64,000 nucleotides of DNA from Zygnema circumcarinatum SAG 698-1b (lineage: Eukaryota; Plantae; Zygnematophyceae), in the NCBI GenBank assembly GCA_037447605.1, contig CM074806.1, positions 4,030,001 to 4,094,000 of the forward strand. Direction: 5' to 3'. Under the pieces are notes generated by a model that was not told the DNA's origin, did not search any database, and saw only the letters and a program-made list of their open reading frames with translations. Both the position numbers and the translations under genes were made by a program. The stretch's first letter is position 1; the number at the start of each line of letters is the position of its first letter. This document shows positions 24,152 through 35,754 of the stretch, in pieces.

Positions 24152-26381
<2,230 letters not shown>

Positions 26382-27521: not shown

Positions 27522-30500
27522 CTAAAACACCGATGCCAATTGGGTGTATGAAGCCTTCAAAAGGGCGAGACTTTCGTCGACGATCGCATCGAGCATGCCT
27601 TGCAGGGGATTGTCCATGTCGACAGTGAAGGTTGTAGACAAGTCGGTCCCCGCCATTACTAAGCTTACAGATCCTCCAACAGAAACTGTGGCTGGTGTCA
27701 TTTCAAAGTTGAAGGAAAGCGAGGTCAAGGCGAAGTAGCTGTCGTTCTCCAAGCTATGTGTGATGTTGAGGATGGTGTCGAGGACGCTGTCAAGCTCATC
27801 GAAGGTTTTATCCACCGCATTCTGCAACGCAGGACGAATCCAACACCAATTTCAGCGTGGAGAATTACTTCCCGGGCCGCAGACAAACGAAGCCGCTCTC
27901 TGATCACCCGACTGTTTGCATGCATGCAAGCTCGTCCCCCACTCCCCACACATACACCATATTGCGCCTTTCCCACACACTCTCCTCCCCTTCCCCCTCC
28001 CCCTCCCCCTCCCCAAGCTTTCATGTTCACAGCTTGTGCTCCAGGACCACTCCCAACGACTGATCCAAAGAGCCAAGCACTCCATCCCATCACCCCTCCC
28101 ACCCTCCCCTCCACGCACCTGCACCTGCACATGCACATGCACGCACATGCACATGCACATGCACATGCACGCACATGCACATGCACATGCACCTGCACAT
28201 GCACATGCACCTGCACATGCACATGCACCTGCACCTGCACCTGCACTCGCACTCCCACCCACCTGCGCTGCAACGAGCGAGCTGTTGGCCGCCTTGAGCG
28301 CCGTCCCTGCCGCGTTGACAGCGGCCGCCTCCGCCCCGTCCAGCACGCTGTTCGCGACCCCCTGCGCGGCCTCCAATGCGCCGTTGGCCGCCCTCAGGGC
28401 GCCCGCCAGCGCCCCCTCCAGGACCGCGTCCGCAGCCTCCTCCGCCGCGCTCACAGCGGCCGAGGCCGCCGCGAGCGCTGCGGCCTCCGTACCGTTCAGT
28501 ACGGCGGAGACCGCGCCCTGGGCTTTGGTCAGGGTGGTCTGGGCAGCACTTAGGGTTTTGCCCACGGCAGAGGAGAGGACGTTGTTCAGGAGGTATTGGG
28601 CGGCGTCCAGGGCGAGGTCGCCGGTTGCTTTGGCGGCTTGAAGGATGGGGAGTTCGGCGGCGTATTGGCAGTAGCAGCAGAAGCAGACGTCGCAGCCCCA
28701 GATGCAGAGTTTTTGGCAGTTGCAGGTGTTGTCTTGGCCCTTGGTGATCATACTCTGCAGGTTGTTGACGGTGAGTTTTGCGGCTGCGAGTTGCTGGTTG
28801 CAAGATATGGAGAAGTTGTTGTAGCTGCATGAGGAGGAGAAAGGGAGAATACGGAGGATGAGTGAGAAAGTTGAGATTGTTGGATAAAGATTGACAGATG
28901 TGAGGGGAGAGGGAAACAGCATATGGTCGTTCGGGAAATGGAGAACGCCGATAAGCATCATGCTTTCATGTTTAAAAATCATGGGAAAGTGTGACGACTT
29001 TAGGAAAGGGTACTCACTTATCTTGAGCAGCTTCCAAAATGTTGGAAGCATCGTTCAAAATTTTAGTGGCCTTTGCATATGCATCGTCAAAAGCCGTTTC
29101 TGCCTCTGCTTCCGCCAATTTCACCGTTGCTAAAACATCCTTTACCTTTGCATCAGCTGCATCAAAGATAGCCTGCGCTGCAAGGACTGTTGTTTGAGCA
29201 GTCTCATACTCTGCATTTATCTGAGAAAAACACCAACAACTTCTTATCAGAAGGATTGCATTCAGTTTAAAAGTTCATGATCACAAGGGAAGACTCTCCT
29301 TGCATTATGTTAGCCATCATAGACATGTGACAAAATACCGCCTTGAGGAGTTGCTTTCTAGTTACTTGCCTTTGCTTGCGCTGCATCAAAATCTGCTTCA
29401 GCTTCTGCGAGAGCATTTTCAGCCGCCTGTAGCTCGGCCTCTTGCTGTGCAATAAACTCGTCGGCAGACGCTTCAGTGGAGTTCAGGACGCTCGCCAGTT
29501 TCTTTACTGATGCTTCAATTGCACCGAGCTGAGAGGTGATGGGTGCGAGCACTAAGCCTCGCAAGATCTGCAGGAGAACCAATGATTTGGGTCCCCATTA
29601 GATTCAATAGTTTCCCAGCGGCGATATTTATAGTCTATCGTACAAAATGTTCTAGACCGGATTGACGTACATTCTTTTATAATTTCAAATGGTATCTCTT
29701 TTTGTACTTTAAAATCATTGAGTAAACGGCGGCATATGAAGGCACACACATTGCACTTGCACAGAATGATCGGTGGTGGAAAGTTCGGCACTCACATCAG
29801 AGAGTACTGTTGTATTTACAGTAACAGCAAAAATAGTACTTTGGCCGTATGGCCCGAGGAAGAGCTCCACTGTCGTTGGAAGCACTGAGAAGAGATTCAC
29901 TTCTCCCGTTACAAACAGCCCCTCGGGCACCACTTGGGGGGACTCGATGTCTTCGGCCGAAAAGGAAATTGAAGCGCTTGGAACGACAAGGTTGAAGGCC
30001 CCCAAGTCTACGCTGATGCCCAACTGCCCGAGCGCAGCTTGAAGGGAGAACGATTGCACCTCCATCAGCAGTGCCGATGGGGCAGGCAAAGTTCTCAAGT
30101 CGTACACTATCAGTTGCGTCGCATTCATCCCCAGAATGGACTCCTGCATCGGGGAGGAGTGGGGGTGGAGAGAGAGTGATAGAGAGTGAGAGTGAGTGAG
30201 AGAGAGGGTTGAGTACAACAGTGCATTGGAATTTCCCAGGAAGGTTCAAGAATAGACAAGGGGTCTACACTCCTTTGTGAGACTAAAAATCTTTCAACGT
30301 TGATTTCTCTCACCTGTGCCATCAGTGCAATGTCGAGATCACCGCTGTTGACATCGAGAGTTGCTTGGAGCTCGAAGTCGCTGATGGCAATAAACGGAAA
30401 CAGAGGCAGAGAATACGTCGTCAAGCATGTGGCGGTGATGGTCAACGTTGTCTCACTCTCTTCGAGGACCATGGCGGCTCCCACAAAGAAATCCAGAGAG

Positions 30501-31749
30501 CTTTCAACGCCGGGGAGGGCAACCCCAATAGTGAAGTTTCCACCGAGCGTGATGCTCTCAGTTGCGCTGTCGAGGTCCAGATCGAATGCGATCACTGAGA
30601 AAGGCGGAAAAAAAAAACGAAGGGGGTCATTTATTTGATGATACCTCCGACCGGTTAAGATTCAAACGATGAGTATTTCAAAAGGTTGAGATCTGCTGTT
30701 TCAATGAAATATTTGACAGAAAGTGGAGGGCTTACAGCCAGGGCCTGTGAAGGGCTCAGGAAGAGTTAGGAGCCATTTCTTGGAGGTCCCAAAATTGATT
30801 CCATTAATCGCATCAGCTGTGAGCAAGATGTCGCTTGAATCAACTCCGAGAAGCGAGAGTGCCTGCATCAATCCATCCAATTCATTGATAATATGAGCAA
30901 CCGAGTATGATGAGCGTTGACATGGAATATTTGGAGGCGCGTTAAAGTGCAAAGGACCTTAAAAACTTCAGCTTTGTGCTCATGACCATTTACGGCTGTA
31001 ACGGAATGATTCAAGAAATGGAGAGAGAGACATAGGAAGAAGGTGCTATCAAATCCGAAGGAACAAGAAGCAAAGTAAGCAGGATCAAATAAAAAACTCA
31101 CATTTGTTAACACTGTGCTGCTATTCATGTTGGGCTCCGCAGTGATACTGAAATTTGAACCTGCTGCATAGCTCATAGAGACATCGGAGAAGATAAAAGG
31201 ATCAAGAAACTTGAAAAGGAACTCCGGAGTTCCAGGGAAAAGTCCTCTCAGGACGCTGCTAAGATTCACATCTTCAGCAGTCAACGAAGCAGTGAGGTTG
31301 TTTCCCGATCCACCGTATGTGAACGCCGTCTGAAAACATCAAGAATATGAAACATGCATGTGCAAGGTTAAATAGCTGCCATACTTTCTCCATTCAAGCC
31401 CTTGGTACTATCTGGAACAATCATCTAATGAGCTAACAAGCAGATTCCACCCAAGCACATGCACGTGATGCGGCGGCCGGCAAAGAAACTTGCCTGTAAT
31501 TCAATGTCAAAAAGTGTCGCATTGAAAGTCCCTTGCAGCCCCACATTTGCAATGGCTGCTAGAGAGACTCCCTCCGTAGTGAAGTTCTTCAAAGCGGGGA
31601 TAGGCTGCCATGGTCCGTACACCTGCAGTCCAACAATCTCTGGATCAGTCTTAAGTTTTCTTATTGAAGGTCCAGCGTCAACCGAGCCGTCTTCAACTTG
31701 TGTGTGTCGTTAGAGAAGTTGGAGTGAGCGAGTGTGTGAGAGAGAGAGA

Positions 31750-31797
<48 letters not shown>

Positions 31798-34700
31798 CTT
31801 ACCGTGAGCTGGACGGAGCTCGAGCCAGCAATGACGAGGCCAATTGAGTTGTTGACAAGGCCGATCTCGGGAATGGAGGCGACCATGTTCACACGCAGAG
31901 ATGCTGGGAGCTCTGTTCCATCGTCCATTTGGAAGCCTGGAAATTCAAAGTCAAACAAAGGAAACACCCTTCTTGTTAGATCTTTTTATATCCGATAAAT
32001 CTCGAAGTTCAGATCGTCCAACGCAACGAGCTAGAGCAATTGCCCATACTGTTCTCGTCCTCCCTCTCTTCTCCTCCCTCTGCCCGCTTCTCTCTTTCCT
32101 CCCTCAATCGGCCCTTTCTCACATTACAGTGGCGAAGAGAGAGGCAGGCTATACCTGGAGATGAGATGTAGAGAATGGAGGGATTGCTGAAAGTCATGAA
32201 CGTATCATCGAGAGGCCAATTGAAGCCCACACGTGTCGCGAGCATTCCCACGGTCCAAAAACCGTTGAGGCCAACGCTCAGCATTCGCAGGCCGTTCAAG
32301 CTGTCAAACACGGCTGGGAGAGAGAGAGAGAGATTCCCTCCAACCTTTCAGTACTGAGATGACGGCTTGCAAACTGAAAGACATCCGCCCTACATTGGAT
32401 GCTAAGCAGTGCGAGGGGTGCAGGGACCAAGGAATAACGAACAAGGCAAGGGAAGGATTGAAGGAAGTTAGCAAAGAGAGAGAGAGAGAGAGAGTGTGAG
32501 AGAGAGAGGAGGGGGGGGGGAGAGATCATCAGTAGGATGTGTGTGTGGCGTACCTCGAGTTGTGAGAGTGGCGGTATCTGATTTAGAGGAGGGAGGTGCG
32601 GGCAATGAGAGGCCGGTGAGAGAGTTGATGCTGCTGTCGAAGGCGGAGAGGAGGAACATCCCCTGCGAGGTCGCGAAGGACATGTCCACAAAGCTCGTGT
32701 TCGTGGTTTGGTTCAGAGTGTACGTCACAGAGGCCGTCGTCAGCCACGAGGTGACGTTGTCGATCGGACCGAGCTGCAAAGGGGAGGAGTAATAGGACCC
32801 ACCCAAAACAAAAGAAGAGGGAGGAAAAAAGTCAGTTGTGGGAAGAGAAAACAGAAGCTATGAATGACAACAAGTGTGTATTCTAGTCTATGAGTTGACG
32901 CCGTAAAGGATGTTGACTTGGTCATAGCAGTTTGCATGCAAGGAGAAACATGCGGTTGAATGTCTCTCACATGGGTCATCTCGCCCACTCGCTCACCTTG
33001 AGCCTGAGCCATGGATCGTTGATGGCAATGAGCTGCTTGAGCAGGCCCGACCCGGTCAGAGAGGAGGGAGAGGGGAGGGGGTCAGCGAGGGAGGGGATGT
33101 TCAGAGCTAATGTCCAGTTGCCATCATAGGCCATGGCTCCTGAAATAGTCACAAGGTCACTTGTGTTGGTGGTGGAGGTAGTCGTTGCAACATCTTGGAA
33201 GGGGTTCAGAGCAGCCGTTAAAGCTGCGTCTCCCGGAAGGCCTAAAATCTGACTTGTTCGTGGAGTTACTCGGGCGGAGGAGAGCTGAATTTTTGCATAG
33301 CTAAGCGTTGCCTGGTAGATATCATTGCTGGTAAGGGGATGAGTGGCGGATTCAATGAGAGAGGAGACGGAGGCAATCGTTTTGCTTGCGCCGGCGAGTT
33401 TGTCGAGCACGAGAGTGATGTCAGCTTCAAGGATTTGGCCGAACATGCTCCTGCAGTTGCTCATAGAGAGGAGAAGGGCAAGAGAGAAGGAGGGAGGGAG
33501 GGAGGGAGTGAGTTAGAAACCTCCAATTTGCTGTGCTGCCTGAATCGGTTCAGGGTGATAATGTGTTCAAGCTGTTGCAGCTATGTTCAGTTCATGAAGA
33601 AGATGGGAGGAGTTTTAGAAATGCTTGAAATGGAGCGGAGTTGAGAGGAAGGATGTGAGTGGTAAACCCAAAGGAAAGTCTCTCACCAGGAGACGCTTGT
33701 GTTGGGCGGCGGCAGAGGACCACAGGTAGACCACATCGGGTTTTCTGCATGGAGCAGAAGAGGGGAGAGTTAAGAGCATGTGAGGAAAGTAAGCGGGATG
33801 GGAGATAAGCGGGGAACGACAGGGAGCGAGTGGGGGGGACGGGGTGAGAAGGGTAGGGAGAGAACGAGACTGTGGGGGACGGGGGGAGAGAGTGGGAGTG
33901 AGGGAGAGGAAGGGCGAAATAGAGAGAGGGGCGGGGAGAGGGAGTGCCTGTGGGGGACGGGAAGAGAGGGGAGGGGTGAGGGAGAGGGAGGGGGCGAGAG
34001 AGAGAGGGGCGGGGAGAGGGAGTGCCTGTGGGGGACGGGAAGAGAGGGGAGGGGTGAGGGAGAGGGAGGGGGCGAGAGAGAGAGGGGCGGGGAGAGGGAG
34101 TGCCTGTGGGGGACGGGAAGAGAGGGGAGGGGTGAGGGAGAGGGAGGGGGCGAGAGAGAGAGGGGCGGGGAGAGGGAGAGGCTGTGGGGGACGGGGAGAG
34201 AGAAGGGGGGTGGAGTGGAAGAGAGGAAGGGAGAGAGGGGCGGGGAGAGGGAGTGCCTGTGGGGGACGGGAAGAGAGGGGAGGGGTGAGGGAGAGGGAGG
34301 GGGCGAGAGAGAGAGGGGCGGGGAGAGGGAGAGGCTGTGGGGGACGGGGAGTGAAGGGGGGTGAGGGAGAGGAAGGCGGGAAGTGGAAGAGGGCCAGAGA
34401 GAGCGAGACAATGTAAGGTACGGAAGAGACAGGTAGAGAGACAAAGAACAACTAAGGGAGAGGGAAAGCGAAAAGCGAGGACAGTTGATGCAGAAAGAGA
34501 CGGGAAAGTGGCGGGGGAGAAGGAAATGAATGACCGACAATTTCTGAAGTTAAACTAATTTTCAGCCTCTTTTTCCGAGTGAGCTTGCTTATGGAAAAGT
34601 ACTCACTGTTCATCTTGACGACCTCCTTCACTGCGACTATGGTCTGATTGGTTCCGTCGGCCGCCGTGTAACTGACCGTCTCCGGAATCTGAGCATAGAG

Positions 34701-35754
34701 CCGCATGATGCCCCACGCGGCGTCCCATACTCCCACAAACTGCGCCACAGTTCCGTGATCCGATAACGGAAACACGTCGACACATGTGCCGTTGATAGTG
34801 GCGTTCGCCCTCAAGTAGGCCTCGGAGACGTTCGCAGGGACGCTGCCCGGGTCGATGTGGGCGATGCGGATGGCGGTGATGGTGCCGATGCTGTTCACAA
34901 CGTAGTTCCATGCGAGCGTGCTGTTGACTTGCTGTTCCGTTATCATTAACGGAGGAGTGGTGGTGGTAGTGTTGTACACGACAGGGATGGTGAGGTAGGA
35001 GCTGATCTCATACGACTGAGGGGGGTCGGCACCTGCATTGCATTGCATTGCAGTGCAGTGCCCGGATTAAAAATGAGATCAAAATTAAAACTGACACGAC
35101 CGAAGATTAAGATTAAAGTTAAAACGAGCAATGAGTGCTTTATTCATATTAAGTTAATTATTTTAATGCTTAGTTTTAAATTTTATTAAAAATTAAGCGT
35201 AAAACAGCTTATATATCGAAGCACACACCTGTAATGTCTTCCCAGTTGGGGATGCTCTGAACCCCCAAAGCGTAGGCGGGGAGGTTCGAACTGCTGACCA
35301 CCGCCGCGCTGCCGACCTGCACTTTGTAGGCCGTCCCGCGGCCCTCCGCCGTGACGTCACCATCCTCGTCGCTCGCCTCGCGGTACCCGAGGGAGACGTA
35401 CGCCGTCGTCTCGTCGTCAGATTCATTGAACCCGGTCAGGCTCGGGGGCGCGTCCAGGAGGTGCTGCACGAGGAAGGCCTGCGGGTCCTTGAGGAGGATG
35501 CTGGCGAGCTTGAGGAGGGCGCAGGGGGGGGAGAGAGGGAGGGGGTCTATGGCGGCGGAGGAGTAGTTGAGGGTCTGCGTGCAGTTGGAGGTGGAGAGGA
35601 GGCGGCGAGCGGGGAGGCGGGAGGGGCGGAGGATGCAGCTGCTGAAGGGGCAGGGACGGGCAGAGGAGGAGGGGAGGGAGGAGAGGAGGGAGAGAGCGAG
35701 GAGGGAGAGGGAGAGGAGGGAGAGGAGGCGGGAGGGTCCGGCAGAGGGCGCCAT
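27522..35754 (-). CDS. Large secreted protein of unknown family, ~1,463 aa, 16 exons (minus strand): 35754-35229, 35032-34607, 33744-33687, 33450-32997, 32773-32554, 32313-32155, 31981-31803, 31622-31494, 31329-31102, 30862-30736, 30594-30314, 30143-29796, 29567-29366, 29210-29018, 28824-28263, 27821-27522
   Basis: Signal peptide ([23 protein letters not shown]), many N-X-S/T sequons, a long region of alternating polar/apolar beta-strands, an Ala-rich heptad region with a Cys cluster, and a C-terminal beta/alpha module. The exon chain is phase-consistent using one GC donor (31493) and one weak AAG acceptor (31982). C-ending codon bias supports the chosen frames. Confidence 0.8.
28115..28246 (+). 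repeat. (TGCACA/TGCACC)n hexanucleotide repeat in the last intron of the large secreted protein gene
   Basis: Read directly from the sequence. Confidence 0.92.
33860..34350 (+). repeat. G-rich minisatellite, 78-bp unit, about 6-7 copies, in intron 2 of the large secreted protein gene
   Basis: The anchor gagtgcctgtgggggacgg recurs at 33942, 34020 and 34098 (period 78), with variants near 33865, 34176, 34251 and 34329. Confidence 0.9.

Follow-up and report, generated by a model that had tools for sequence, protein, structure and literature searches.

The window analysed here comprises 64,000 nucleotides of Zygnema circumcarinatum SAG 698-1b (assembly GCA_037447605.1, contig CM074806.1, positions 4,030,001 to 4,094,000 of the forward strand), and all positions below are counted from its first letter. 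Its minus strand carries, from 35754 to 27525, a multi-exon gene for a giant protein, with 16 open exons that sum to 4,344 nt, or 3 × 1,448 codons. The first ATG lies at 35754 in a CCACC-ATG-G context and the stop codon occupies 27524-27522. A preliminary description of this DNA, made from the sequence alone, had placed a gene for a protein of about 1,460 residues at 27522-35754; the gene is present, the 1,448-codon model comes close to that length, and every peptide quoted in the description is found in the translation of the locus. The model was built from stop-free minus-strand segments, with donor/acceptor pairs scored for consistent phase and the DNA read directly. Fourteen of the 15 introns (141-862 nt) are GT-AG introns, every acceptor ends in CAG, and the sole non-GT donor (CAG/GCAAGT; 31488-31493) belongs to a GC-AG intron between exons 7 and 8. 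GC content is 0.565 in the exons and 0.495 in the introns. Exons 2 and 3 are in frame only through a 58-nt mini-exon, exon 2b, which is therefore required; its splice sites are good (acceptor GCAG/, donor /GTGAGA), and it is the weakest point of the model. The locus is best read as one intact, intron-rich nuclear gene, organized as follows:

35229-35754, minus strand: exon 1, 526 nt; segment resembling a signal peptide (about 35659-35754), followed by the Cys/Pro/acidic part of the N-terminal region; donor CAG/GTGTGT
34607-35032, minus strand: exon 2, 426 nt; N-terminal domain that leans toward β-structure, 6 sequons
33687-33744, minus strand: exon 2b, 58 nt; tentative mini-exon
32997-33450, minus strand: exon 3, 454 nt
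32554-32773, minus strand: exon 4, 220 nt; Ser/Thr/Asn-rich (42%), 3 sequons
32155-32313, minus strand: exon 5, 159 nt
31803-31936, minus strand: exon 6, 134 nt
31494-31622, minus strand: exon 7, 129 nt; ends at the GC-AG intron
31102-31329, minus strand: exon 8, 228 nt; 4 sequons
30736-30862, minus strand: exon 9, 127 nt
30314-30594, minus strand: exon 10, 281 nt; clearest amphipathic β-strand run, 15% Asp+Glu and zero Lys/Arg
29796-30143, minus strand: exon 11, 348 nt; beta-leaning module, the sole part of the body with detected relatives
29366-29567, minus strand: exon 12, 202 nt; the Ala-rich helical region begins here
29018-29210, minus strand: exon 13, 193 nt; Ala/Glu/Asp-rich amphipathic helix of period 3.6
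28263-28824, minus strand: exon 14, 562 nt; Cys-rich insert, then five 26-residue Ala-rich helix repeats
28668-28724, minus strand: dense Cys cluster within exon 14, 8 Cys in 19 residues; TGC/CTG-rich DNA
28263-28658, minus strand: the five 26-residue repeats of exon 14, each unit opening with VLxGxE, in a register shared with the environmental protein P0005
27525-27821, minus strand: exon 15, 297 nt; the final helix, a hydrophobic meander of strands (about 27612-27737), then an amphipathic helix at the C-terminus

At the N-terminus of the product, a single Arg precedes a Leu/Ser-rich core of 18 residues, and the likely cut lies between Ser-Ser-Ala and Arg-Pro. The basic n-region, the hydrophobic core and the small residues at -3 and -1 of the signal peptide proposed in the preliminary description are all present, as judged by eye and by hydropathy, without a dedicated predictor. 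This segment has a Kyte-Doolittle 19-residue mean of 1.96 and is the sole transmembrane-like stretch of the protein, with all others at 1.5 or below. Its codons are made of CT-rich low-complexity DNA that is common in the genome, so an export signal is likely rather than proven. N-x-S/T sequons number 31, compared with 13.4 ± 3.2 expected from within-exon shuffles, a 2.3-fold excess that was reached in 0/5,000 shuffles and that bears out the heavy N-glycosylation potential suggested earlier. The excess independently supports entry into the secretory pathway, and these features of the sequence support a product that is heavily glycosylated and presumably secreted. The net charge is about -78, Lys and Arg together make up 4% of the residues, and Ala, Leu, Ser, and Thr are abundant. 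The C-terminus, read from the sequence with no predictor, carries neither a GPI-type hydrophobic tail nor a KDEL-type ending.

Chou-Fasman propensities divide the remainder of the protein into exons 2-11, which lean toward β-structure, exons 12-14, which are clearly helical, and exon 15, which is mixed. The helical region (roughly 340 residues) had been described as some 300 residues of Ala-rich heptads forming a long coiled coil, a view that the periodicity contradicts. Hydrophobic power peaks at 3.6-3.67 residues in exons 12-14 and in P0005, and in exon 14 it amounts to 22.3 at a period of 3.67 compared with 1.1 at 3.5; exons 13-14 are significantly amphipathic as helices (z 2.4-3.8). Moreover, the helix is broken every 26 residues. 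The last 132 residues of exon 14 are self-similar at offsets of 26 and 52 residues, with mean BLOSUM62 scores of 1.13 and 1.20, values that none of 2,000 shuffles reached (maximum 0.88). Both offsets exceed all 2,000 shuffles in P0005 as well, and a 52-residue super-period overlies the 26-residue repeat in the helical region. The term 26-residue Ala-rich helical repeat fits this region better than "coiled coil". A search of the literature on a 26-residue repeat of this kind and on zygnematophyte secretomes found nothing relevant.

The source of this comparison, P0005, is a 254-residue protein from a Logan assembly that was retrieved by a word search with exon 14 (E 1.8e-9). It aligns with the last 132 residues of exon 14 without gaps and in the 26-residue register (55/132 identical), and continues gapless across all 99 residues of exon 15 (19/99 identical) with a score of 77. 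Shuffled sequences score -72 ± 19 over exon 15 (z 7.7), 0/20,000 of them reach 77, and the next best offset scores 2. The C-termini of the two proteins end no more than one residue apart. This register-based gapless comparison replaced a MAFFT alignment, in which exon 15 had been misplaced onto the helices, and it confirms the exon 14/15 junction. The repeat tail and the C-terminal cap, which together make up the C-terminal 231 residues, form a conserved unit; the C-terminal module singled out in the preliminary description is real, and it is conserved in P0005. An AlphaFold2 prediction from P0005 and exon 14 was too poor to use (pLDDT 45.5), and in the low-confidence P0005 model the helices are interrupted at intervals of about 26 residues, with three strands and one more helix after them. 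A 9-Cys segment precedes the exon 14 repeats and interrupts the helical region. The Cys cluster lies inside a 21-residue insertion that is missing from P0005 and may consequently be a recent low-complexity expansion, perhaps of the trinucleotide type, rather than an old disulfide knot.

Family, library, and structure searches were run exon by exon. With exon 11 as the query, HMMER returned three matches from 1.84 billion representative proteins, namely P0001, P0002, and P0003. P0001 was rejected as spurious, being a Thr-rich bacterial repeat protein. P0002 and P0003 (E 2.6e-4 and 7.8e-4, respectively; 28-33% identity) are exon-sized open reading frames on short metagenome contigs from ENA. The relatives of exon 11 (P0002 and P0003/P0004) start at the position of its acceptor and end near that of its donor, and P0002 and P0003 open with a translated pyrimidine tract and CAG directly before the homologous Glu/Asp-Ser/Thr start. 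The pyrimidine tract and the shared splice positions indicate that P0002 and P0003 correspond to exon 11 in eukaryotic genes that contain introns. When the exon 11 alignment served as a profile, the library yielded nothing beyond these two open reading frames, and a word search of the protein library with exon 11 gave no match.

No exon reached significance in Pfam, NCBIfam, or the PDB sequences. Among 15 exon pieces searched against Pfam and NCBIfam at E ≤ 1, only five weak matches were found, all unrelated to lipid-transfer families, and a PDB sequence search with exon 15, the exon 11 profile, and P0005 gave no match. With very few relatives in large libraries besides, the earlier statement that the protein has no recognisable family stands. 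Identity to the three real relatives is only 28-42%, and their sequences make a solid case for a small, fast-diverging family without annotation.

The strand-rich body had been described as about 800 residues of short alternating hydrophobic strands. The β lean of exons 2-11 agrees with this, but a period-2 amphipathic signal is clear against shuffles in exon 10 only (z 3.2), with modest values in exons 6-8, 11, and 15 (z 1.2-1.7). Comparison of the body exons with one another by blastp revealed no internal repeat; only the helical exons resemble one another, and no paralogue of the gene was detected by blastp within the window. AlphaFold2 on the exon 11 alignment gave a pLDDT of 35.8, too poor to use.

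Taken together, these data favor, with a probability of about 0.5, a lineage-restricted, fast-evolving structural or adhesive glycoprotein associated with the extracellular matrix, wall, or mucilage. The product would enter the secretory pathway through its cleavable N-terminal signal, many of the 31 sequons would be N-glycosylated, and it would leave the cell as a highly acidic glycoprotein about 1,450 residues long. It would be built of three parts, beginning with the strand-rich body of about 1,000 residues (exons 1-11). The body would be followed by a tail of about 340 Ala-rich helical residues, of which at least the last 130-156 would be arranged as 26-residue units, each with about 22 helical residues and a Gly-containing turn; these units most likely stack as antiparallel helices through their small-residue faces of Ala, Gly, and Ser. 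The third part would be the small conserved C-terminal cap, with three strands and a helix. With its negative charge, the protein would be well suited to bind cations or the pectic matrix. Localisation, helix stacking, and the matrix role are what we infer from these features.

Several points weigh against this interpretation. The role in matrix or adhesion is deduced solely from composition and architecture, and the body may instead bind ligands or handle lipids. The term "restricted" is perhaps overstated, as the libraries may cover zygnematophyte proteomes poorly. The gene model is drawn from the sequence; within it, exon 2b is tentative, and the signal peptide, with its low-complexity coding DNA, is likely but not proven. 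Finally, the library of 1.84 billion proteins holds no transcript-derived protein that contains exon 11.

Other explanations were considered for the gene, its origin, and its function. It is improbable that the locus has been mis-modelled and consists of two genes, a pseudogene, or a silent relic. Such a reading could draw on the lack of RNA evidence, the 862-nt repeat-filled intron, the unsupported 58-nt mini-exon, and the absence of this gene's own product from the protein libraries, but 16/16 exons are open, with consensus splice sites and consistent phases, the sequon excess runs on through exons 3-15, which depend on the signal in exon 1, and protein-level conservation is seen in exon 11 and in exons 14-15. 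The preliminary description had further raised a horizontal origin, with relatives scattered in bacteria and fungi. Scans of bacterial and archaeal genomes (one genome per species, 185,579 species; alignment A3 and exon 10), of JGI metagenomes (alignments A1 and A3), and of viral contigs (A1, A3, and exon 2) were blank, as was a tblastn search of plasmids. These blanks are weak evidence, because the pattern-based contig scans detect fairly close relatives only. The three real relatives look like eukaryotic exons, and horizontal origin has no support. A specific version of this idea, in which the protein is a distant member of the bacterial and fungal family DUF6603 (PF20248), possibly acquired horizontally, is quite improbable. 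It stems from a Pfam match in exon 15 (E 0.064, 12.3 bits, 32/502 profile positions) that falls well short of the gathering threshold of 27 bits and is confined to that exon, and from a protein-language-model atlas in which DUF6603 is among the nearest named clusters for exons 11 and 15, both at 0.80; the two atlas clusters that carry DUF6603 hold bacterial and fungal (Ascomycota) members. However, a scan of about 18 pieces at E ≤ 1 is expected to yield one match at E 0.06 by chance, and the match was not reproduced in P0005, P0002, or P0003. A third of shuffled proteins reach atlas scores of 0.8, and exons 11 and 15, which are unrelated in sequence, draw the same clusters (DUF6603 and Myco_19_kDa), suggesting an effect of composition. 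The bacterial genome scans are blank, and fifteen spliceosomal introns argue against a recent transfer. A literature search found no paper that mentions the family. The resemblance to DUF6603 is probably compositional.

The amphipathic strands and helices also invite comparison with lipid-handling and membrane-active proteins. The preliminary description likened the body to the AsmA/VPS13 groove, that is, to a repeating β-groove (RBG) of the VPS13/ATG2/AsmA/TamB type acting as a conduit for bulk lipid transfer. The long, β-leaning and partly amphipathic run, followed by C-terminal amphipathic helices, is loosely RBG-like, but this reading finds no support in the searches and is very improbable. 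The families concerned (Chorein_N, VPS13, ATG2, AsmA, and DUF490/TamB) are presumably represented in Pfam and NCBIfam, and no such lipid-transfer profile matches, since no exon drew a model at E ≤ 1 other than the five unrelated weak matches. In addition, the body exons lack an internal repeat, the genome scans found no bacterial relatives, and the cleavable-looking signal and the sequon excess would place the protein outside the cell, whereas known eukaryotic RBG proteins are cytosolic and others of the group periplasmic. It is unlikely that the protein is secreted to carry or bind lipids or other hydrophobic compounds, in the manner of apolipoproteins or of a large lipid-transfer protein, although its export features agree with such a role. 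In such a carrier, a pocket would be made of amphipathic β-sheets, and a hydrophobic surface would be covered by a tandem series of amphipathic helices, each about 22 residues long. The amphipathic strands of exon 10, the amphipathic helices of exons 13-14, and the short breaks between helices of about 22 residues with 11/3 (3.67) periodicity agree with this arrangement; helices of this length and periodicity are typical of apolipoprotein A-I-type repeats. On the other hand, there is no match at E ≤ 1 to the apolipoprotein, ApoLp-III, Vitellogenin_N, or lipid-binding models of Pfam and none in the PDB sequences. Ala, Gly, and Ser predominate on the apolar helix faces, a composition more in keeping with packing between helices than with lipid contact, the breaks contain Gly rather than Pro, and the unit is 26 rather than 22 residues long. 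A bolder proposal, to which we give a similarly low weight, would make the protein the founding member, undescribed to date, of an extracellular family, shared by conjugating green algae and environmental eukaryotes, that handles hydrophobic material outside the cell, with the strand body and the helix repeats acting jointly as a secreted carrier that resembles lipoproteins or as a groove-type extracellular conduit. We know of no carrier or conduit of such a kind in the plant lineage. It is very improbable that the protein is secreted to attack membranes or for defence, with a hydrophobic strand "tongue" borne on a helical bundle as in α pore-formers of the ClyA/Hbl/Nhe type. The helices, hydrophobic three-strand meander, and amphipathic helix of the conserved C-terminal module may resemble these toxins, but the searches showed no similarity to toxin families or to solved structures, and the module accounts for only about 100 of the 1,448 residues.

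Repeats and low-complexity DNA are found within and beside the gene. Two tandem arrays lie in its introns:

33870-34376, no strand assigned: 78-bp tandem repeat, 6.6 copies with 88% matches, within the 862-nt intron 2; noncoding in the model
28115-28246, no strand assigned: (GCACAT)n microsatellite of about 22 copies, in the last intron

On the minus strand, the 78-bp repeat translates into proline-rich, extensin-looking open frames of up to 320 codons, which are probably not coding. The (GCACAT)n microsatellite is missing from the gene or transcript of P0005. A (GA/CT)n microsatellite of roughly 0.7 kb, with open frames on both strands (Leu-Ser and Arg-Glu repeats), lies at 24450-25290, and CT-rich tracts that resemble it occur in many introns and in the signal-peptide codons of the giant gene. 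Just downstream of the gene, on the plus strand, a 293-codon open frame (25345-26223) starts with DPHF...G..Y.F.G...FCLVSD..LHIN, a pattern that recalls plant root-cap/LEA-type proteins. Pfam gave no match to this frame even at E ≤ 1, and the domain perhaps lies in another exon.

The extracellular matrices of streptophyte algae, which stand next to the land plants, are elaborate and serve in adhesion, gliding, conjugation, and the tolerance of desiccation; the protein components of these matrices are, to our knowledge, largely unknown. To these matrices, the present gene would add a large, family-less, and presumably secreted glycoprotein that is conserved in parts, with a previously unrecorded 26-residue helical repeat and a conserved C-terminal cap, and, given data on its expression and structure, it would offer a well-defined target for studies of the secretome and of localisation. 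The gene does not in itself settle any long-standing question, and it would gain importance only if the body of the protein turned out to have a new fold or to handle lipids outside the cell.

Among known systems, DUF6603 shares with the giant protein a sub-threshold likeness to the strand meander of exon 15 and a similar feature profile for two of its exons, but the score is far below the gathering threshold and the match is not repeated in P0005. The exchangeable apolipoproteins, the families of which are animal, resemble it in being secreted and in having tandem helices of about 22 residues with 11/3 periodicity and helix breakers. They differ in a unit of 22 rather than 26 residues and in a Pro breaker where the giant protein has Gly-x-Glu; its apolar face is made of Ala, Gly, and Ser, and the two share no sequence similarity. 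The RBG proteins (VPS13, ATG2, BLTP1-3, and AsmA/TamB) are comparable in size and in the succession of a β-leaning amphipathic region and amphipathic helices. In contrast to them, the giant protein has no sequence match to the group and no detectable repeat in its body, and its export signal and sequons point to an extracellular glycoprotein.

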